A stretch of DNA of 64,000 bases from Adineta vaga (Eukaryota; Animalia; Rotifera): the NCBI GenBank assembly GCA_021613535.1, contig CP075492.1:13082001-13146000 (forward strand). The letters are read 5' to 3'. Numbering within the stretch: the first letter of the stretch is position 1; the number at the start of each line of letters is the position of its first letter. Below are positions 19,539-58,073 of the stretch, in pieces. Under the pieces are notes generated by a model. The model saw only the letters and a list, made by a program, of their open reading frames with translations, was not told the origin of the DNA and did not search any database. A program made the translations under genes and the position numbers.

Positions 19539-21485
19539 TTATATCCTCAAAGTGCCCATTACAAGAAAGATAAACATGAATATCACTGGTTCGACTATTG
19601 TCGAAGATGAAATAAGGAGTGGAGATATCTTGTGAGACATTTGCGTTCGTCTTCCACATAAGGTAAACATTTCAGGTGGTGATTGAATTAATCCTTCATA
19701 ACGTCCATTTCGTTCTACAGAAAAAACAAGAGCCATACCTGGCCAGATATGCCATTCCATATGACAATGTAAAAACCATGGACCTGGATTCGTTGCAGTA
19801 AATCGAAAAACAATATAACTTTCACGTGGAATATTAAATGAATCACCCATACTAAGAACGGGTGGTGTTGAATTCAATGCTGGTAAAATACTAGCATAAT
19901 CAAATTTATGAATATCTCGTCTTGTTCGATTACATGTTGCTGGTTGTAAACTTGGTATTTTTCCAGCCGCAATAAAATCAACTGAATAACCATGTAAATG
20001 CCATGGATGTAATTGAGGATCATAATTAATCATTAAAATTTCATAAGTTTGACCGTATTCCAAATGTTGAATATGAGTCGCATGCCTATTGTTGACACGA
20101 CCAGATCGTTCATCAGCTATGCAATTTTGAAATGTACCATCGAGAAAATTAGCATGAAGTATGGGTTCTTTTGGAGGTTCGAAAGTGATACCGTTGACAG
20201 TCCATTCTTCTAAAGCATCAACGTACGAACGATTATCCCAATGAACTTCGAACTCGAGTTTAATACGACGAATAGCAACAGGTGCAAAACGAGATTTAAC
20301 TGGTTTTAAAAACTTATATTCAAAAAATGAATCATCAGCATCAACAATTGGTTCTTCTATCGATTGAATTGCACGACTATGAATAGAAATATTTGAATAG
20401 GTTAGTAATGCCCATGTCCACATCATTGGCGTCTGTCCAGTCATATTTTTCGTTGGTAAATAACTATTTCGACTAGCAACAAAGATTGTATATTTTAATC
20501 TCGCATCTTGACTACAATTTACAATTAAATCAAGTCTTTGCCCAATAGCAATATGTACATGTGGCACAGTTATAGGTAGAATTTCAATACTATCTCGAGC
20601 AACAATCGTAAAATTATGTTCATCAATCCAGAATCGAAATGGAATACCACTAGCAGCATTGATTAATCGAAGACGAACTAATTTACCGGATGGACATAGA
20701 AATTCATCGATTGGATGTGCATCAGGATTACAATCACCAAGAAAAGGTGCACGTAATGGTACACATTGACTTGGATGTCGACGACCACAAGTATCACGCC
20801 AAGTATTAGCTTCCGTACAATTCGATATTCGACAATCGAAACGACCATGACCATTAATCAAGAAAGAAGTAGGTGGCCATGGATAAATCGGTGCACTACC
20901 ACGATATGCATCATATGGTCCTTGATATGCAGTCATTAGGTCAGGCCATGTCTCATGGTACCATTCTTGTAACATAATCACATAATCATGCGAACCATAA
21001 TCATATTGCTGTTCAATACTATCATGATCAAGTATGATAGGACCAATTAACCCATCAGCATATTGTTGTGCATTATGTGAATGATACCAAAACGTTCCTG
21101 TTTGCGTTATATTAAATTCATAAATAAAGCTTTCATGTGGATGGATGGGACATTGAGTAATATGTACAGTTCCATCAGCCCATGGATTATTTAACATGTG
21201 AAGACCGTGAAAATGAATAGCTGTTGACTGATCACGTAGCATATTAGTCACATGAATACGAAGTCGATCGCCGAGTTTAGCCCGAATGAGAGGACCAGGA
21301 AATGGCCGATCAATATTCCACGAGGAATTGGCATGATGCATAATAATAACAGGTCGTGGATATCCATCTGGATTTGCTGGAATACTACGAATGATGAAAT
21401 CATATTCAACAAGTGCACATTGAATCAAAGAATTCCGACAACAAAGGTAAAAGAGTAAAATGAACTGAATGGAAATATGATACAT
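19539..21485 (-). CDS. Multicopper oxidase (laccase/ascorbate-oxidase-like), intronless, signal peptide and hydrophobic C-tail
   Basis: All four copper motifs are present: HFHG, WYHSH, HPWHLHG, HCHMEWHIWPGM. Single 648-aa ORF. Confidence 0.95.
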   Translation of the reverse strand: MYHISIQFILLFYLCCRNSLIQCALVEYDFIIRSIPANPDGYPRPVIIMHHANSSWNIDRPFPGPLIRAKLGDRLRIHVTNMLRDQSTAIHFHGLHMLNNPWADGTVHITQCPIHPHESFIYEFNITQTGTFWYHSHNAQQYADGLIGPIILDHDSIEQQYDYGSHDYVIMLQEWYHETWPDLMTAYQGPYDAYRGSAPIYPWPPTSFLINGHGRFDCRISNCTEANTWRDTCGRRHPSQCVPLRAPFLGDCNPDAHPIDEFLCPSGKLVRLRLINAASGIPFRFWIDEHNFTIVARDSIEILPITVPHVHIAIGQRLDLIVNCSQDARLKYTIFVASRNSYLPTKNMTGQTPMMWTWALLTYSNISIHSRAIQSIEEPIVDADDSFFEYKFLKPVKSRFAPVAIRRIKLEFEVHWDNRSYVDALEEWTVNGITFEPPKEPILHANFLDGTFQNCIADERSGRVNNRHATHIQHLEYGQTYEILMINYDPQLHPWHLHGYSVDFIAAGKIPSLQPATCNRTRRDIHKFDYASILPALNSTPPVLSMGDSFNIPRESYIVFRFTATNPGPWFLHCHMEWHIWPGMALVFSVERNGRYEGLIQSPPEMFTLCGRRTQMSHKISPLLISSSTIVEPVIFMFIFLVMGTLRI

Positions 21486-47537: not shown

Positions 47538-50500
47538 TTATTTAATAGCTTGTAAAACACCATTCACTCGTTTGGATGTGATTTGACCATCTTCTTCGGT
47601 TATTTCAGTTACCTGACCATTTTCTTCCACTCTATACACAAACAAAAGAGAGAGAAACAAAGTAATCTTTTTTTGATAAGAGATAATCAAAATTTGATGT
47701 TACCTCGTCGTTGTAACACGGCGACCATTGATTGATTTAGTTGATTTAGTAGTTTTTTTCGAAATCGGTCGAGAACCATTGCCACCACTAGAAACAAATG
47801 CAAACAAATTGATTTTGTTTTTCTTTATATTCATATAAAATCTACATACCCAAACGAGATATTAAATGATGAAATTGTTCCCATATTATCTCCACCCAAA
47901 TTACCGGCAAATGATTGATGATTGAATAAAGGCGTTCTCATTGGAGAAAAGAAATTATCGAACAAAGTCATTTGTTGTGGTGCACGTCTTGAATTGGAAC
48001 TATTTGGATCTCGACTATGGCGACGGTGTAAATCAGCAAATGGATGCATACCAAAACCTAGAAACGAAATATCATTCCAATCAATTCTTCCACGAAAAAA
48101 CAACAAAATTTCTAGTTAAAATAGGATCATTTTAGATGCAATTTTAGTTAAAAAAAATTTCCCATCACCACATGCGCAATGCAAGCATCATTCAAAAACG
48201 AGAAAAATTCCTTCAGAATCCATCTGGTGTTCTCACCAGAACATACTATATGATGTGTCCATATGTCTAAAAATAAGCCAGAAGCAACGTATGCAAGCTT
48301 ATGCTTATGTTTGTTGTTCGTTTTTATTTTTTTTATATGGGCTTTGTTGAATTGATTAAACGAAACATACGAACTTACCAAACTCATCTTCCATGCCGAA
48401 ATGTGACATGAATTGTTCAAAGATATCGAATGGATTGTGAAAATGAAATGTTCGATTAAGAAAATCTTCGGAAAATCTTCCATAACCTTCATTCGATGAA
48501 GAACCACCATTGTTACCATTGGTGAAAGCTCCTCTACCCAACTGATCATATCGACGACGTTTATCTTCTGAAAATTTTTTTAGAAAAAAAAACAAAAACA
48601 CATATATCCATTCTAGGTTAGTAAAGAGCAATTAATGAGCAGCAGCAGCAGTAGTCGTCATGTCTACTTCAATTCCAATTTCCCATGTGTGATTTTCTAC
48701 GAAAGTTTTTACCTTTACTTTTTTCCTTGAAAACTGGTTTATTATTAATTGCTGTTTCATTTTTATGACGAATACTACGTCGAATACTTTTTAATGGTGA
48801 AGTTAATTTCGATGTATTATCTGATATTCCATCAGTAATTGTTGGTGATGGACGTTTATCACCTGTATCAGTTTGACAACTCATATGTCTCATAGATTTC
48901 GCACGACGAAGACCAGGACTAGCTGGTAATGGATAATCATCTAATGTTTCATAACTAATTAAACGAAAATCTTGATATTGATTTTCTGTTGTTTTATTAT
49001 TTGGAATTTCTAATAATTCAATGGATTTAATATTATTAGGAATTTTATCTCCACCAAGTGCAACAGCAGATGAAATAATACCTTGTTGACCAAGAATTAA
49101 AAGTTTATCACGTTCATCTTGTGATGGAATTGGATGAGAGATAAGATTATCAACCAATGTACATGGTTTACGTAGGAAACAATTTAGATTTGTTTTAGGA
49201 AATTCAATATCGTCAATACGATGACGAGCCATTTGTTCTTTTACGGACGTAAGCAATGATGGAGCTTGAACAAATTTGGCACGATGCATCGAATGAATAC
49301 GAGATGATTGAGTAGCAATTGGATTAAAATTTTCCATTGTTGCAGCAAAACGTGCCGCTTCTAATTGCTCTTCAACAATTCGAGCTAATGCAGCAGAATC
49401 AAATTCCCGTGATTCACTTGTTGATGATATTGTTGAACGTCGTCGTGGTTCAACATATGTTTGTCGTCGTTTAATTGTAGGTTTTTTATGATGATGATGA
49501 TGATGATGATGATGAACTTCTGGTTTGGTTATTTTTGGTTCTTGTAATGTCGGTGGTGGTGCGCAAGGGGGCATTACTGGTGGTTGCTGTTGTTGTTGTT
49601 GTTGCTGCTGCTGTGGTGGTGGTGGTGGAGATCCTTGCTGCTGCTGCTGCGGTAGTTGTTGTTGTTGTTGTTGTTGTTGCTGTTGTGGTGGTGATGGCGG
49701 CGTTGGTGGTGATGGTGGTGTTGGTGTCGGTTGCTCCTGCTGCTGTTGCTGCTGCTGCTGAGAAGAGTGACGAACATAATCATGTATTTTAATCAGACGT
49801 TCGATATCATTGGAAAGATTTAGATTTGAAAAACGATTATTTTTTATAATATTTTCATTTTCTTCGGGAATAATATTGATATATCGTTTAACGAATTTTA
49901 AATCAGAATTCTCTCGATCAACTTGAAAATCATAATAAACTGACATATTTATTTCATGAACAACACGTGGTTTTAATTCATTTTCGCTTTCAGTCGTTGC
50001 TGGAATTTCTTCATAATCATTTTTATTTGTTGATAAGATAAATGCTGGTAAATCTTCTTTATCAAATGTGTCATGTTGTTGAAATTCTTTTTGACAAACA
50101 TTAAGAAATTCTTCATCATCAATTATTGTACGAAATAATTCTTCTAATTCTTCGTTGGTTCGTTCGCTATAAATAATTGATGAACCCAATTGATCATATA
50201 AAAACCGTCCACGACCTGTTTATATATTTATTAAGGGGAAAAAAAGAAACGACTACTGCTGATGCTGTTTTCTTCAAAAAGCATGAAAAGCTTTTTCTGT
50301 TTTTTTTTATTTTCTTCATTTACTCACTGTCTGATAAAATTTCATATGCTTCAGAGATTAATTTGAATTTTTCTTCTGCTTGACTTTTATTTGAAAGATT
50401 TTTGTCCGGATGCCACTAGGAGAATATGAAAGAAGAGAAACCGCGTATTATTATGAAATTGAAACCAATTAGTATATACGCAATGTTTTACCTTTAAAGC

Positions 50501-50638
50501 TAATCGGCGATATCTAAAAATAGTATACATATAATCTAATTAGATGATTCTTATCTCGACAAATATAACATACGCTTTCTTGATTTCATCTTCAGTGGCC
50601 GTCTTCTCGACCTCAAGTATTTCGTAAAAGTCGGTCAT
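47538..50638 (-). CDS. DNAJB6: DnaJ homolog subfamily B member 6/2-like co-chaperone, canonical isoform of about 249 aa (exons 50574-50638, 50492-50513, 50328-50415, 48379-48567, 47850-48057, 47704-47787, 47538-47631)
   Basis: J-domain [10 protein letters not shown]...YRRLALKWHPDKN...[24 protein letters not shown]; G/F region with [13 protein letters not shown]; C-terminal domain [43 protein letters not shown]. Confidence 0.92.
48669..50215 (-). CDS. Alternative terminal exon of the DNAJB6-like gene encoding a polyQ/polyP/polyH low-complexity tail (isoform of about 573 aa)
   Basis: An acceptor (pyrimidine tract...AAACAG) at 50216-50217 is in phase with the J-domain donor at 50326-50327, giving ...[21 protein letters not shown].... 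The frame is open for 1547 nt. Confidence 0.8.
49490..49760 (-). repeat. Coding trinucleotide repeats (CAG/CAA, CCA, CAT) giving polyQ, polyP and polyH
   Basis: tgc/tgt/tgg/tga runs are directly visible on the plus strand. Confidence 0.9.
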
Positions 50639-54548: not shown

Positions 54549-55322
54549 TTAAATTTTTTGAGAACGGATATTTCCTGATGTTGGTCGTTCAATATTAACC
54601 ATTGGTATTTGAGGTGTTAGATCGTATACAGGTAATGAAAAATAGGAATTTTCTCCTTTTTTGAGTAAACTAGCAAAAGCTGCATACCAAGCGATGACAG
54701 CTGTTATAATTCCAAAAACACCTGCGGCACGTTGTAAATTATAATCATTTTGTTGAAATTTACATGCTGTAAGAAGAATAAATGTAAGTGTTAAACAGAA
54801 GAATAATGCTATTAAAGCAACATTAGTTCGAAGAGATGAAACCAACATAGCTGCTGTAAATATAGTCCAAGCGAGGAAAAAAACACCAAAGGCTTTGTTC
54901 ATTGTTACAATATCGATAGAATTCAAAAAATTAAACAAATAAATGTTCAATGAAGATAATCCAAGCCAAAAGCCACCATACGAACAAAATGCTAACGCAC
55001 CGAAATTATTTCCAATACGAAATTCTAATAAACCAGCAATAAGTTGAATTAAACCACCATAGAACAAAGCTAAACCCATGACAACACCATGTGAAGCTGT
55101 TACAGGTATACCAATACCTGCATTGTACATCGAGAGGACAAATGTTGTCAATGCAAAAGCACAGAGACCAAGTGGTGTTGGATTTAAACGTGGTGCTGCT
55201 CGTGGTGATGATGACGATGTTGGTGGATACATTTTCAATAAACGTTCAAATTCAAGAAATCGGTCGTATGTTGTACGTGTTGAAGTTTCAACCGTTTCAT
55301 AATACTGCTGTTGATGTGACAT
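54549..55322 (-). CDS. GPR1/FUN34/YaaH (SatP/Ady2) acetate transporter family, intronless
   Basis: Family signature NPTPLGLCAFALTTF, plus FYGGLIQLIAG, GNNFGALAFCSYGGFW and six hydrophobic segments. The likely start is MSHQQQYY at 55322. Confidence 0.92.
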   Translation of the reverse strand: MSHQQQYYETVETSTRTTYDRFLEFERLLKMYPPTSSSSPRAAPRLNPTPLGLCAFALTTFVLSMYNAGIGIPVTASHGVVMGLALFYGGLIQLIAGLLEFRIGNNFGALAFCSYGGFWLGLSSLNIYLFNFLNSIDIVTMNKAFGVFFLAWTIFTAAMLVSSLRTNVALIALFFCLTLTFILLTACKFQQNDYNLQRAAGVFGIITAVIAWYAAFASLLKKGENSYFSLPVYDLTPQIPMVNIERPTSGNIRSQKI

Positions 55323-55887
55323 ACTTCGTTCGTATAAGCAAAAAGATATTTGAAAAAAATCTCTTTGAATTTTATATCTATCAATCAAACGACGTGAGAG
55401 ACAATTCACTTGTATATATGGACAGTTAAATAGCAACAATCTATCGTACTTATCTGCAAAAAGAAACAACTGAATATTGACTTTTATCAATCGTACACAA
55501 GTAATAAATAACTCATAAACTCGAATATAAGGATTATAGAATGCTGTTGTTGTTGTTTTGTGTATTGATGATTACAACGAATGTAGATCTTTATCAAGGC
55601 AAATAGAGTTATTTTTACTACTGATTAATCCTATTCATAAAATGTATCTTTTCGCTTTGATTACGCATCGATAAATTTGTCTAAGAACGCAAATAAACGC
55701 ATGTGAATCATGATCAAAAGTGAAACGAAAGTTTATTCGACTTTTTTGAAATTCCTTTAATATTTTGTTACTCTTTAGTAGTATTACAATTATTTTTAGC
55801 AATTCTTCATCTTAACTTTCTGATAAGCAAACTGCACTTGCATGATAACGAATATCTTTCGTTTTCTTCTCTTTTCATGGGCTGAAA

Positions 55888-58073
55888 ATGCATTTTTCGA
55901 CGTTTTATATCTTAGTATTCCATGTTATTAACTACGCATTTACTTTATCGTCAATTTATGTTGTTCCAAATCTACAACCGATCAGTAAAGAAGATGGATC
56001 ATTACAGAATCCCTTTTCTAAAATTGAACATGCTCGAAATTATCTTCGTATGCTATCTCGAACGACAGTTCAACGTGTTGCTCTTTATCCTACATATCAT
56101 TTTTTAAACAATCATACATTATCATTTGATGAACGTGATCATTTAACAATCTATACAAAAATGTCTGATAATGAACGAAATCAAATTTCATTTGATAGAA
56201 AACAAAATTTGATTGAATTAGATTTTCCAATCATTAGTGGTGGTATTCGTTTAACAGACTGGACTATTGATAAAGAAGTAAGTATTAAGAAAAAATCTAC
56301 TTTTGAAATCTTTCTTTTACACTAAACGTTTAGATCTGGCGTATTCGTCTACCTACTTCTTTATCTACTGTGACACAACTATTCGTTAACGGTCAACGTG
56401 CTATTCGTAGTCGTTTACCGTTAAATGATTATTTCTATTATGAAAAAGGACTTGCTTATCAAGGTTTTATCTATCGTGAACATCAGTTTGATAATATTAC
56501 ACTTAGTTCTACATCAAGTAGTGAAATTATTATTTATCATTCATTTACTACGTCTCGTCATTATTTCTCTCGAATATTTCCACAAAATCGTTCAATACTT
56601 TTTACAAATCCATCATTATCAGTCATTGGTAATACATCAATTATTCAACAATCTGGTCAACGTTTTCATCTCGAAAATATTTACGAAGGAATGATTTTAC
56701 AATCAGGTTCATTCTATTTTGATTCGCTCACACAAATATTATATTATCATGCACGACCAACGGAACATTTACAAAATACATTGATTATTTTACCAATAAT
56801 CGAAATAGTTCTATCAATGATTAATGTTACTAAACTTGAATGGAATTCAATTGGAATTGAACATAGTGCATGGATGGTATCTACAAAGATGAATAAGAGT
56901 CTTCCAATTGATGGACGAGCAGCAGCTGATTATACCGATCGATCAATCATTGCTGTCTATCTTCGTAATACATCTGAAGTTACATTCAATAAAATTGAAA
57001 TAGCACATATAGCTGGTTATGCAATACAAATCGATGAAAATTGTCAAGAGATTCAAATTGAAAATAGTCAATTCTATGATTTAGGTGCAGGTGGTATACG
57101 AATGGGATTGACTAGAGTAAATGAAAATGATAAGAAACAATTTATAGAAAATATTCGCATCGAAAATTGTTCTTTATTTAATAATGGTCATCTATTTCCT
57201 ATGGGTGTTGGTATTCTCCTTCAACTTGCAACAAGAAATATCTTAATAAAACAAAATACTTTCTATGAATTTTTTCATACCGCTATCCATATTGGTTGGT
57301 CATGGTAAGTTATTATTATGTTATCATTTACTTTTTTTTACATAACTACTATAACGTTTTCTAGGAGTTACGATCAAAGTTTCTGTTATAATCATACAAT
57401 ATCTTTTAATTATATTCATCATCTTGGTCAACATGTGTTAAGTGAACTTGGTGGTATTTATACTTGTGGTGTATTAAATGAAACATTTATAACAAATAAT
57501 ATCATACATGATATCTATGGATATTTTTTACATGATTGGGGAATCTATTTAGCTGATGGAAGTTCACAAATCATAATAAGCAATACCATTGTTTATAATA
57601 CAGGTTCAGCTTCATTTACAATGATCTATGGTTTTAATAATACATTTCAAAATAATATACTTGCTCGATCAAGTAATGAAAGTGATGGTGCACTTTCCCT
57701 ATATCGTCGTGAAGCAATTGATCATTTAGCATTTACATTTTCGAACAATATTATCTATGATATTGTCAATACAACTGGCCGTTGGATATTTCAAGTTCAA
57801 GCACCGGATCCATTTTCAGCACCATTAGTAAGGATGAATTATAATTGTTATTTTAATTCGTATGGAGCGATGTTTATTTTTGGTCTTGGACGACTAGTTT
57901 TCAGTGAATGGCAAGAAACAAATCATGATATGAACAGTCTTATTACAGATCCATTGTTTATCAATGCAGAAGATCAATGTAATTTCTTTCGATTTCATAC
58001 CAACAGTCCAGCATTAAAATTAGGTTTTAAACCAATTGAATTCTTGTCTCAATGGAAACCTGGATGTTCTTAA
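55888..58073 (+). CDS. Secreted right-handed parallel beta-helix protein (pectin-lyase fold, GH141-like), 3 exons
   Basis: Signal peptide; DGSLQNPF; PIISGG; QLFVNGQRAIRSR; DLGAGGIRMG; IGWSW; LSELGGIYT; WGIYLADGSS; SPALKLGF. Introns at 56278-56333 and 57305-57364. Confidence 0.82.

Follow-up and report, generated by a model that had tools for sequence, protein, structure and literature searches.

A 1.5-kb open reading frame in a bdelloid DNAJB6 gene is probably an in-frame cassette exon held off by a long-range RNA duplex

The DNAJB6-like gene in the window (the whole 64,000-nt stretch of Adineta vaga DNA analysed here) poses the question of what a very long open reading frame is doing between the exon that carries helix III of its J-domain and the exon that carries helix IV. 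The frame is open for 514 codons, which has a chance probability of ~7e-19 at the local base composition, and an initial annotation had read it as one of two mutually exclusive endings of the gene. The central part of that proposal, that an apparently orphan frame belongs to the DNAJB6-like gene as an alternative exon, is borne out by our analysis, in which the exon is conserved, is under purifying selection and completes the J-domain (Pfam DnaJ, 1-63/63). Its ending, its products and its regulation now read differently. On the sequence evidence, the 1.5-kb frame is with good probability a frame-preserving cassette exon, carried by one of two bdelloid DNAJB6 copies and normally kept out of the mRNA by a long-range RNA duplex.

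Gene identity and the borders of the cassette

The gene is A. vaga DNAJB6-like I4U23_014987, and our model of the form that skips the cassette is identical to the annotated protein over 249 aa (Table 1; the A. vaga genome used comprises 100.8 Mb in 6 contigs). This skip form has the features of a DNAJB6-like protein, namely an HPD J-domain, a G/F region with a helix V-like segment and a DNAJB6-type C-terminal domain, and its best solved match is the human DNAJB6b structure 6U3R (E 2.5e-36), in an alignment that spans residues 1-135 and 194-247. The Pfam DnaJ domain is complete (1-63/63) in P0047, a protein 94% identical to the window skip form, and also in inclusion-type Rotaria proteins. The annotation of these genes needs correcting, as A. 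vaga lists the short form only and Rotaria the long form only.

Table 1. Features of the DNAJB6-like gene, in window coordinates
Feature	Position	Strand	Remarks
Coding exon 1, DNAJB6-like	50574..50638	-	ATG; J-domain helices I-II; skip model identical to I4U23_014987
Coding exon 2	50492..50513	-	22 nt
Coding exon 3	50328..50415	-	HPD motif, helix III; phase-1 donor
Upstream intronic arm	50249..50267	-	19-nt core; pairing in the folded pre-mRNA predicted to extend over the pyrimidine tract to ~50237
Cassette exon (probable)	48713..50215	-	symmetric phase 1-1; 1503 nt, 501 codons; own J-domain helix IV plus ~490 aa limited to bdelloid-like sequences; second in-frame donor at 48719
Gln/Pro/His low-complexity tract within the cassette	49488..49760	-	apparent lineage-specific expansion at a length-variable site
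ORF read-through into the intron	48669..48712	-	14 codons + stop; unconserved; C-terminus proposed by the initial annotation
Downstream intronic arm	48640..48658	-	19-nt core with YGCY cluster; complementary to the upstream arm
Constitutive exon 5	48379..48567	-	native helix IV, G/F region, helix V
Alternative microexon, unannotated	48237..48266	-	30 nt, in frame, after helix V
Exon 6	47850..48057	-	coding
Exon 7	47704..47787	-	C-terminal domain begins here
Last coding exon with stop	47538..47631	-	coding

A calmodulin-like EF-hand gene of 168 aa (window 46573-47182, - strand) lies downstream of DNAJB6 in all loci, and several Rotaria annotations (P0013, P0016, P0017) fuse the two genes, probably in error. 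Elsewhere in the window, Pfam identifies a 648-aa single-ORF multicopper oxidase (19539-21485, - strand), a GPR1/FUN34/YaaH transporter (54549-55490, - strand) and a beta-helix protein (56370-57308, + strand), gene types that are often of foreign origin in bdelloids. A set of large exons at 35226-44513 (+ strand) includes a 989-codon ORF without a Pfam match; because one of these exons gives a weak MOR2-PAG1 match, this gene is probably Furry-like.

At its 5' side the exon is bounded as the initial annotation had drawn it. The last nucleotide of exon 3 is 50328, where a GT donor follows in phase 1, the AG acceptors at 50215 and 48567 both carry on its frame, and the cassette and exon 5 both begin with the R..YDQLG helix-IV motif in the same register, with YDQLG 17 nt past the acceptor in each. 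The translated models are a short form of 249 aa and, as drawn there, a long form of 573 aa. Because phase, register and YDQLG are all shared, the sequences suggest that the cassette arose when the beginning of exon 5 was duplicated.

The 3' side is another matter. The long exon had been ended at the stop at 48669, but a phase-1 donor 44 nt before that stop (AAAG/GTAAAA at 48713/48712) is conserved and the 14 codons that follow it are not. A phase-1 donor, a length that is a multiple of three (849-1503 nt) and a frame without stop or frameshift are found in 14/14 distinct loci, where the donor count takes in either the main donor or a tandem one 6 nt upstream. Past the donor, the read-through amounts to 2 to 46 codons whose sequence is unrelated between loci, and in two loci it reaches exon 5 without any stop. 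The window itself has two in-frame donors 6 nt apart (48719, 48713); in the lineage of L019, L022, L029 and L031 only the upstream donor survives, the downstream one having been lost.

The conserved in-frame donor also speaks against mutually exclusive endings, as does a JGI contig, L014, in which none of the four downstream introns is present and the cassette runs from this donor directly into exon 5. A twin of L014 on another contig, 93% identical, continues into the intron at the cassette donor. Because its introns are absent, while its twin keeps intron sequence at this point and the intron is also present in a related genomic contig, L014 is best read as a spliced transcript, represented by one contig from a distant species whose library type is not stated; its 5' start consists of 11 nt of the upstream intron. 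The model of this inclusion form (cassette to exon 5) is 750 aa long and retains the entire C-terminal part, including the substrate-binding domain that the long form had been thought to lose. For the joint between exon 3 and the cassette, we draw on gene predictions in Rotaria and A. ricciae and on the start of the cassette, which completes the J-domain and has 21 invariant residues in its first 40. Database searches used single exons of the window, with public Rotaria proteins representing the joined J-domain and cassette. Skipping of the cassette is well supported by sequence: intron-free, cDNA-like skip proteins of 247-266 aa are many on 1-kb contigs, and several, of 247-264 aa, fall within the clade of the cassette-bearing copy (P0047; support 97/86).

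These borders bear directly on the alternative that the ORF is a last exon, closed by intronic polyadenylation after the stop at 48669 to give a 573-aa J-protein without the substrate-binding domain, which we regard as unlikely. Such an arrangement would have a counterpart in the human DNAJB6 short isoform, which is made by intronic polyadenylation (PMC6917656), the frame is open for 14 codons beyond the donor, and AATAAA stands soon after the first stop in 3/15 loci (15 nt into the intron). However, the poly(A) signal expected after 48669 did not appear, as the intron has neither AATAAA nor ATTAAA in the window, and the same holds for 10 other loci; the read-through codons are unrelated, with two loci lacking a stop before exon 5; and the donor is conserved and always in frame, with both exons joined in L014. 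A terminal form of 573 aa may exist as a minor third product.

Intronic arms flanking the cassette

Flanking the cassette is an inverted repeat that the initial annotation did not contain, in which 19 nt at 50267-50249 pair with 48658-48640. The predicted duplex between the flanking introns reaches -33 kcal/mol, as against -7 to -19 for the gene's other 20 intron pairs, and in all 13 loci tested it is stronger than in shuffled sequences (z -3.1 to -6.7). In the alignment of the arm core around a fixed 5-bp anchor (the triplet repeat allows slipping), 193/196 cells are paired and 18 have two-sided changes, with one pair seen as G-C, G-U and A-U in different species; these counts are descriptive and non-independent, given that anchor and bulges were fitted and that the loci are related. 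A check independent of the fitted anchor comes from the four loci that diverge most: their arm sequences differ from the others, and each arm pairs best with its own partner. When the whole 1760-nt region is folded, the arms pair in the minimum-energy structure and the helix continues into the cassette acceptor, covering its pyrimidine tract, and in L026 the arms pair in both the minimum-energy and centroid folds. The cassette acceptor is, in most loci, pyrimidine-poor beside its AG compared with the exon 5 acceptor, and the downstream arm carries 2-8 YGCY motifs per locus. An Rfam search returned chance matches only, and no conserved competing partner for the arms was found in the cassette or the other introns.

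Several further features of these introns were observed. The CAG-rich polyQ stretch of the A. vaga cassette (window ~49630, - strand) can pair with the downstream arm at -29 kcal/mol, compared with -33 for the true partner, and the best in-exon partner of this arm in other loci is weaker than in A. vaga; polyQ-arm pairing could shift inclusion, in A. vaga only. Conserved intronic words also occur outside the main helix, one being a GTAGAAA..CA..GGGA element after the donor (window ~48701-48680, - strand), which may extend the duplex toward the branch-point region, and another the AGCTTTTC.TGC element of the upstream intron (50290-50277, - strand). A divergent species (L033, 190-300) no longer has an intron separating coding exon 2 from coding exon 3, and keeps the cassette together with a fully rewritten arm pair.

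In the mechanism that we propose, the arm of the downstream intron, once transcribed, would pair with the upstream arm, and the duplex would mask the pyrimidine tract at the cassette, where the acceptor is weak and A-rich, while drawing the exon-3 donor near the exon-5 acceptor, such that the cassette would be looped out and the 249-aa DNAJB6 would be the default. The direction of this effect, toward skipping as opposed to aiding inclusion or back-splicing, is read from geometry and precedent, and it is from the human PHF20L1 and CASK cases that we infer skipping as the default (PMC10573301, PMC8052449). Looped-out exons are less included, and among complementary-region pairs the strongest class lies at <= -30 kcal/mol (PMC8052449, PMC10573301). 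With PHF20L1 exon 6, CASK exon 19 and the PCCR catalogue, the bdelloid gene shares two conserved intronic arms around a cassette and membership of the strongest energy class. In contrast to the human loop-outs, the exon here is very large (0.85-1.5 kb), the introns are tiny (74-161 nt), the two arms lie directly against the splice sites, with the pyrimidine tract covered, and the covariation that is often missing in vertebrate cases is rich. Literature searches found no rotifer loop-out duplex of the PCCR type.

The duplex might instead serve mainly for back-splicing, yielding a 1503-nt circular RNA with a stop-free frame and leaving the linear long protein secondary, a reading that we consider more unlikely still than a terminal exon. 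A long single exon with short inverted repeats within ~40-60 nt of its two splice sites is a known recipe for circles (PMC4201285), the exon size and a lariat route are compatible with it (PMC4479058; also PMC8052449), and the back-spliced frame is stop-free in all loci. Any symmetric cassette, however, automatically gives a stop-free circle, the best-conserved first 40 codons make sense only when joined to the J-domain, and the extended duplex covers an acceptor pyrimidine tract that back-splicing would need too. Known inverted-repeat circular RNAs (the ZKSCAN1 and HIPK3 minigenes, Drosophila laccase2) likewise have a single long exon with short arms near both splice sites, but the arms here are conserved unique sequence and not transposon repeats, and selection acts on the exon at the protein level, as a linear insert, with the circle only putative. 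A circular by-product is plausible by analogy of geometry.

Docking site-selector systems of the Dscam1 type act on mutually exclusive exons, with a docking site that has at least two competing conserved partners. They resemble the present gene in their long-range intronic pairing beside a duplicated exon; here, unlike in those systems, there is one arm pair only, without a conserved competitor, and both exons can share one transcript.

Conservation of the cassette and its absence from the sister copy

A search of relatives, set as a check, recovered 36 relatives of the cassette at E <0.001, including annotated Rotaria proteins of ~700 aa. A profile search of 1.84 billion representatives returned 15 proteins, all recognisably the same exon, and found no homologs beyond bdelloid-like sequences. 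Pfam and the ESM Atlas offered no usable match to the cassette, the best Atlas lead being 0.76, and a Pfam zf-C4H2 match on the ORF was set aside as below cut-off and caused by polyQ.

Selection on the protein, a further check, was evident in a pooled pN/pS of 0.24 for codons 1-45 and 0.30 for codons 81-150, with 0.4-0.7 elsewhere. Over the same locus pairs, the ratio is 0.46 for the whole cassette and 0.29 for constitutive exon 5, with synonymous sites partly saturated among the 14 stop-free loci. Constraint on the cassette is uneven, since one close Rotaria pair (L011-L012) has a cassette dN/dS of ~1.06. Protein conservation is strongest across the first 40 codons, the stretch with the 21 invariant residues. 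The polyQ/polyP/polyH tail, to which the initial annotation had given importance, fares differently: Gln runs of 8, 10, 5 and 10 with Pro5 and His9 are indeed present in the ORF, but the tract has 0-7% identity to relatives, and a Gln run is absent from 9/13 other loci and present in only three. PolyQ as the functional core of the cassette was rejected for this poor conservation, and the Q/P/H tract is, judged from the alignments, a lineage-specific expansion at a length-variable site.

It is very unlikely that an internal promoter drives the ORF by itself, with no J-domain attached, or that the ORF is a separate nested gene. L014 does start inside the upstream intron and a Met follows directly after YDQ in several species, but the Met site is Leu, Ile, Phe or Tyr elsewhere, the window included, an invariant RGRFLY lies upstream of it, and the AG acceptor of the cassette is kept in all loci.

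The second DNAJB6 copy of A. vaga (L009; G000:C6 near 1.70 Mb; candidate annotation I4U23_027760) has a plain 240-nt intron, and the cassette and both arms are absent from it. This copy keeps the microexon and the downstream EF-hand gene, and has a His run of its own in exon 6. In the DNAJB6 tree, which is unrooted and has a long branch as its deepest row, cassette gain may precede or follow the genome duplication. The 30-nt in-frame microexon after helix V (window 48237-48266, - strand; L009 near 4731, - strand) occurs in each of the two A. vaga copies as well as in four further loci, but is missing from the A. vaga annotation; its third-codon Trp is conserved, it is included in the cDNA-like P0046 and P0059, and it would carry a stop in L025. 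Least likely of all is that the cassette is a decaying duplicate, silenced by the duplex and without a useful protein now, a reading for which one could cite its loss from the C6 copy, the dN/dS near 1 in one Rotaria pair and the rarity of inclusion transcripts in the sequence collection, but against which stand 14 loci without stop or frameshift at partly saturated synonymous sites and the invariance of 21/40 first residues.

The long protein and a possible splicing switch

In the 750-aa inclusion form, the cassette's own helix IV would finish the J-domain and two conserved helices would follow, while the substrate-binding domain and the original autoinhibitory element (G/F-helix V) would come to lie 500 aa further downstream. 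The G/F region and helix V are displaced 501 codons from the J-domain in this model, and its match to 6U3R stops at residue 70. A predicted structure for the N-terminus (residues 1-112) of the protein from Rotaria sp. Silwood1 (pLDDT 79.6) has helices at 79-90 and 93-108 after helix IV and matches DNAJB1 JD-GF over 90 residues at 2.7 A and 6U3R at 3.5-5.9 A, with the qualification that it was built from a shallow alignment and may echo training structures. A larger 215-aa model was discarded (pLDDT 42.7). The resemblance to helix V proposed by the initial annotation does not hold in sequence, where the profile-profile match covers 11 columns around YDQLG at 23% probability, but in the model the first helices can sit at the helix V site, which lends weak support to the idea that the cassette supplies a replacement helix V.

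In DNAJB6, helix V blocks Hsp70 binding, and its release causes muscular dystrophy in people and Hsp70 hyperactivation in worms (PMC10624832), so that moving helix V 500 aa away should alter regulation, either way. The inclusion form is likely a J-protein with differently regulated Hsp70 binding and a mostly disordered insert that carries conserved short motifs. The likeness to DNAJB6/MRJ (class B, DNAJB2/6/8) lies in the skip form, with its J-domain, G/F-helix V and C-terminal domain. Human DNAJB6 isoforms a and b differ in terminal exons only (PMC6917656), whereas the alternative exon in bdelloids interrupts the J-domain ahead of helix IV, provides a substitute for that helix and adds 500 aa. 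A literature search found no paper linking DNAJB6 and rotifers.

Under the loop-out mechanism proposed above, inclusion could be reached by three routes. The upstream intron would be spliced before the far arm exists, 1.6 kb later, in which case elongation rate would matter; the downstream intron would be removed first, the state seen in L014; or a protein bound to the YGCY-rich arm would open the duplex, our guess being a protein of the Muscleblind type. Taken further, the duplex could be a condition-sensitive switch (responding, for example, to drying, heat or elongation rate) between autoinhibited DNAJB6 and a 750-aa form confined to bdelloids, where the cassette would rebuild the J-domain end and remove or replace autoinhibition, while the skipped exon might yield a circular RNA with an endless frame. 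This full scheme is speculative, and we put it forward as a tentative and rather doubtful extension of the cassette reading.

Loop-out duplexes as such are known; we found no description of one that flanks a lineage-specific cassette of 500 codons within a J-domain. The duplex is an unusually clean and strongly co-varying example, contained in 1.8 kb of a compact invertebrate gene, and the sister copy has lost both the duplex and the exon. A natural isoform with helix V 500 aa away and a new conserved module would show another way of tuning Hsp70 recruitment and, if the proposed switch is true, Hsp70 recruitment would be regulated by splicing inside the J-domain itself, in a drying-tolerant animal.
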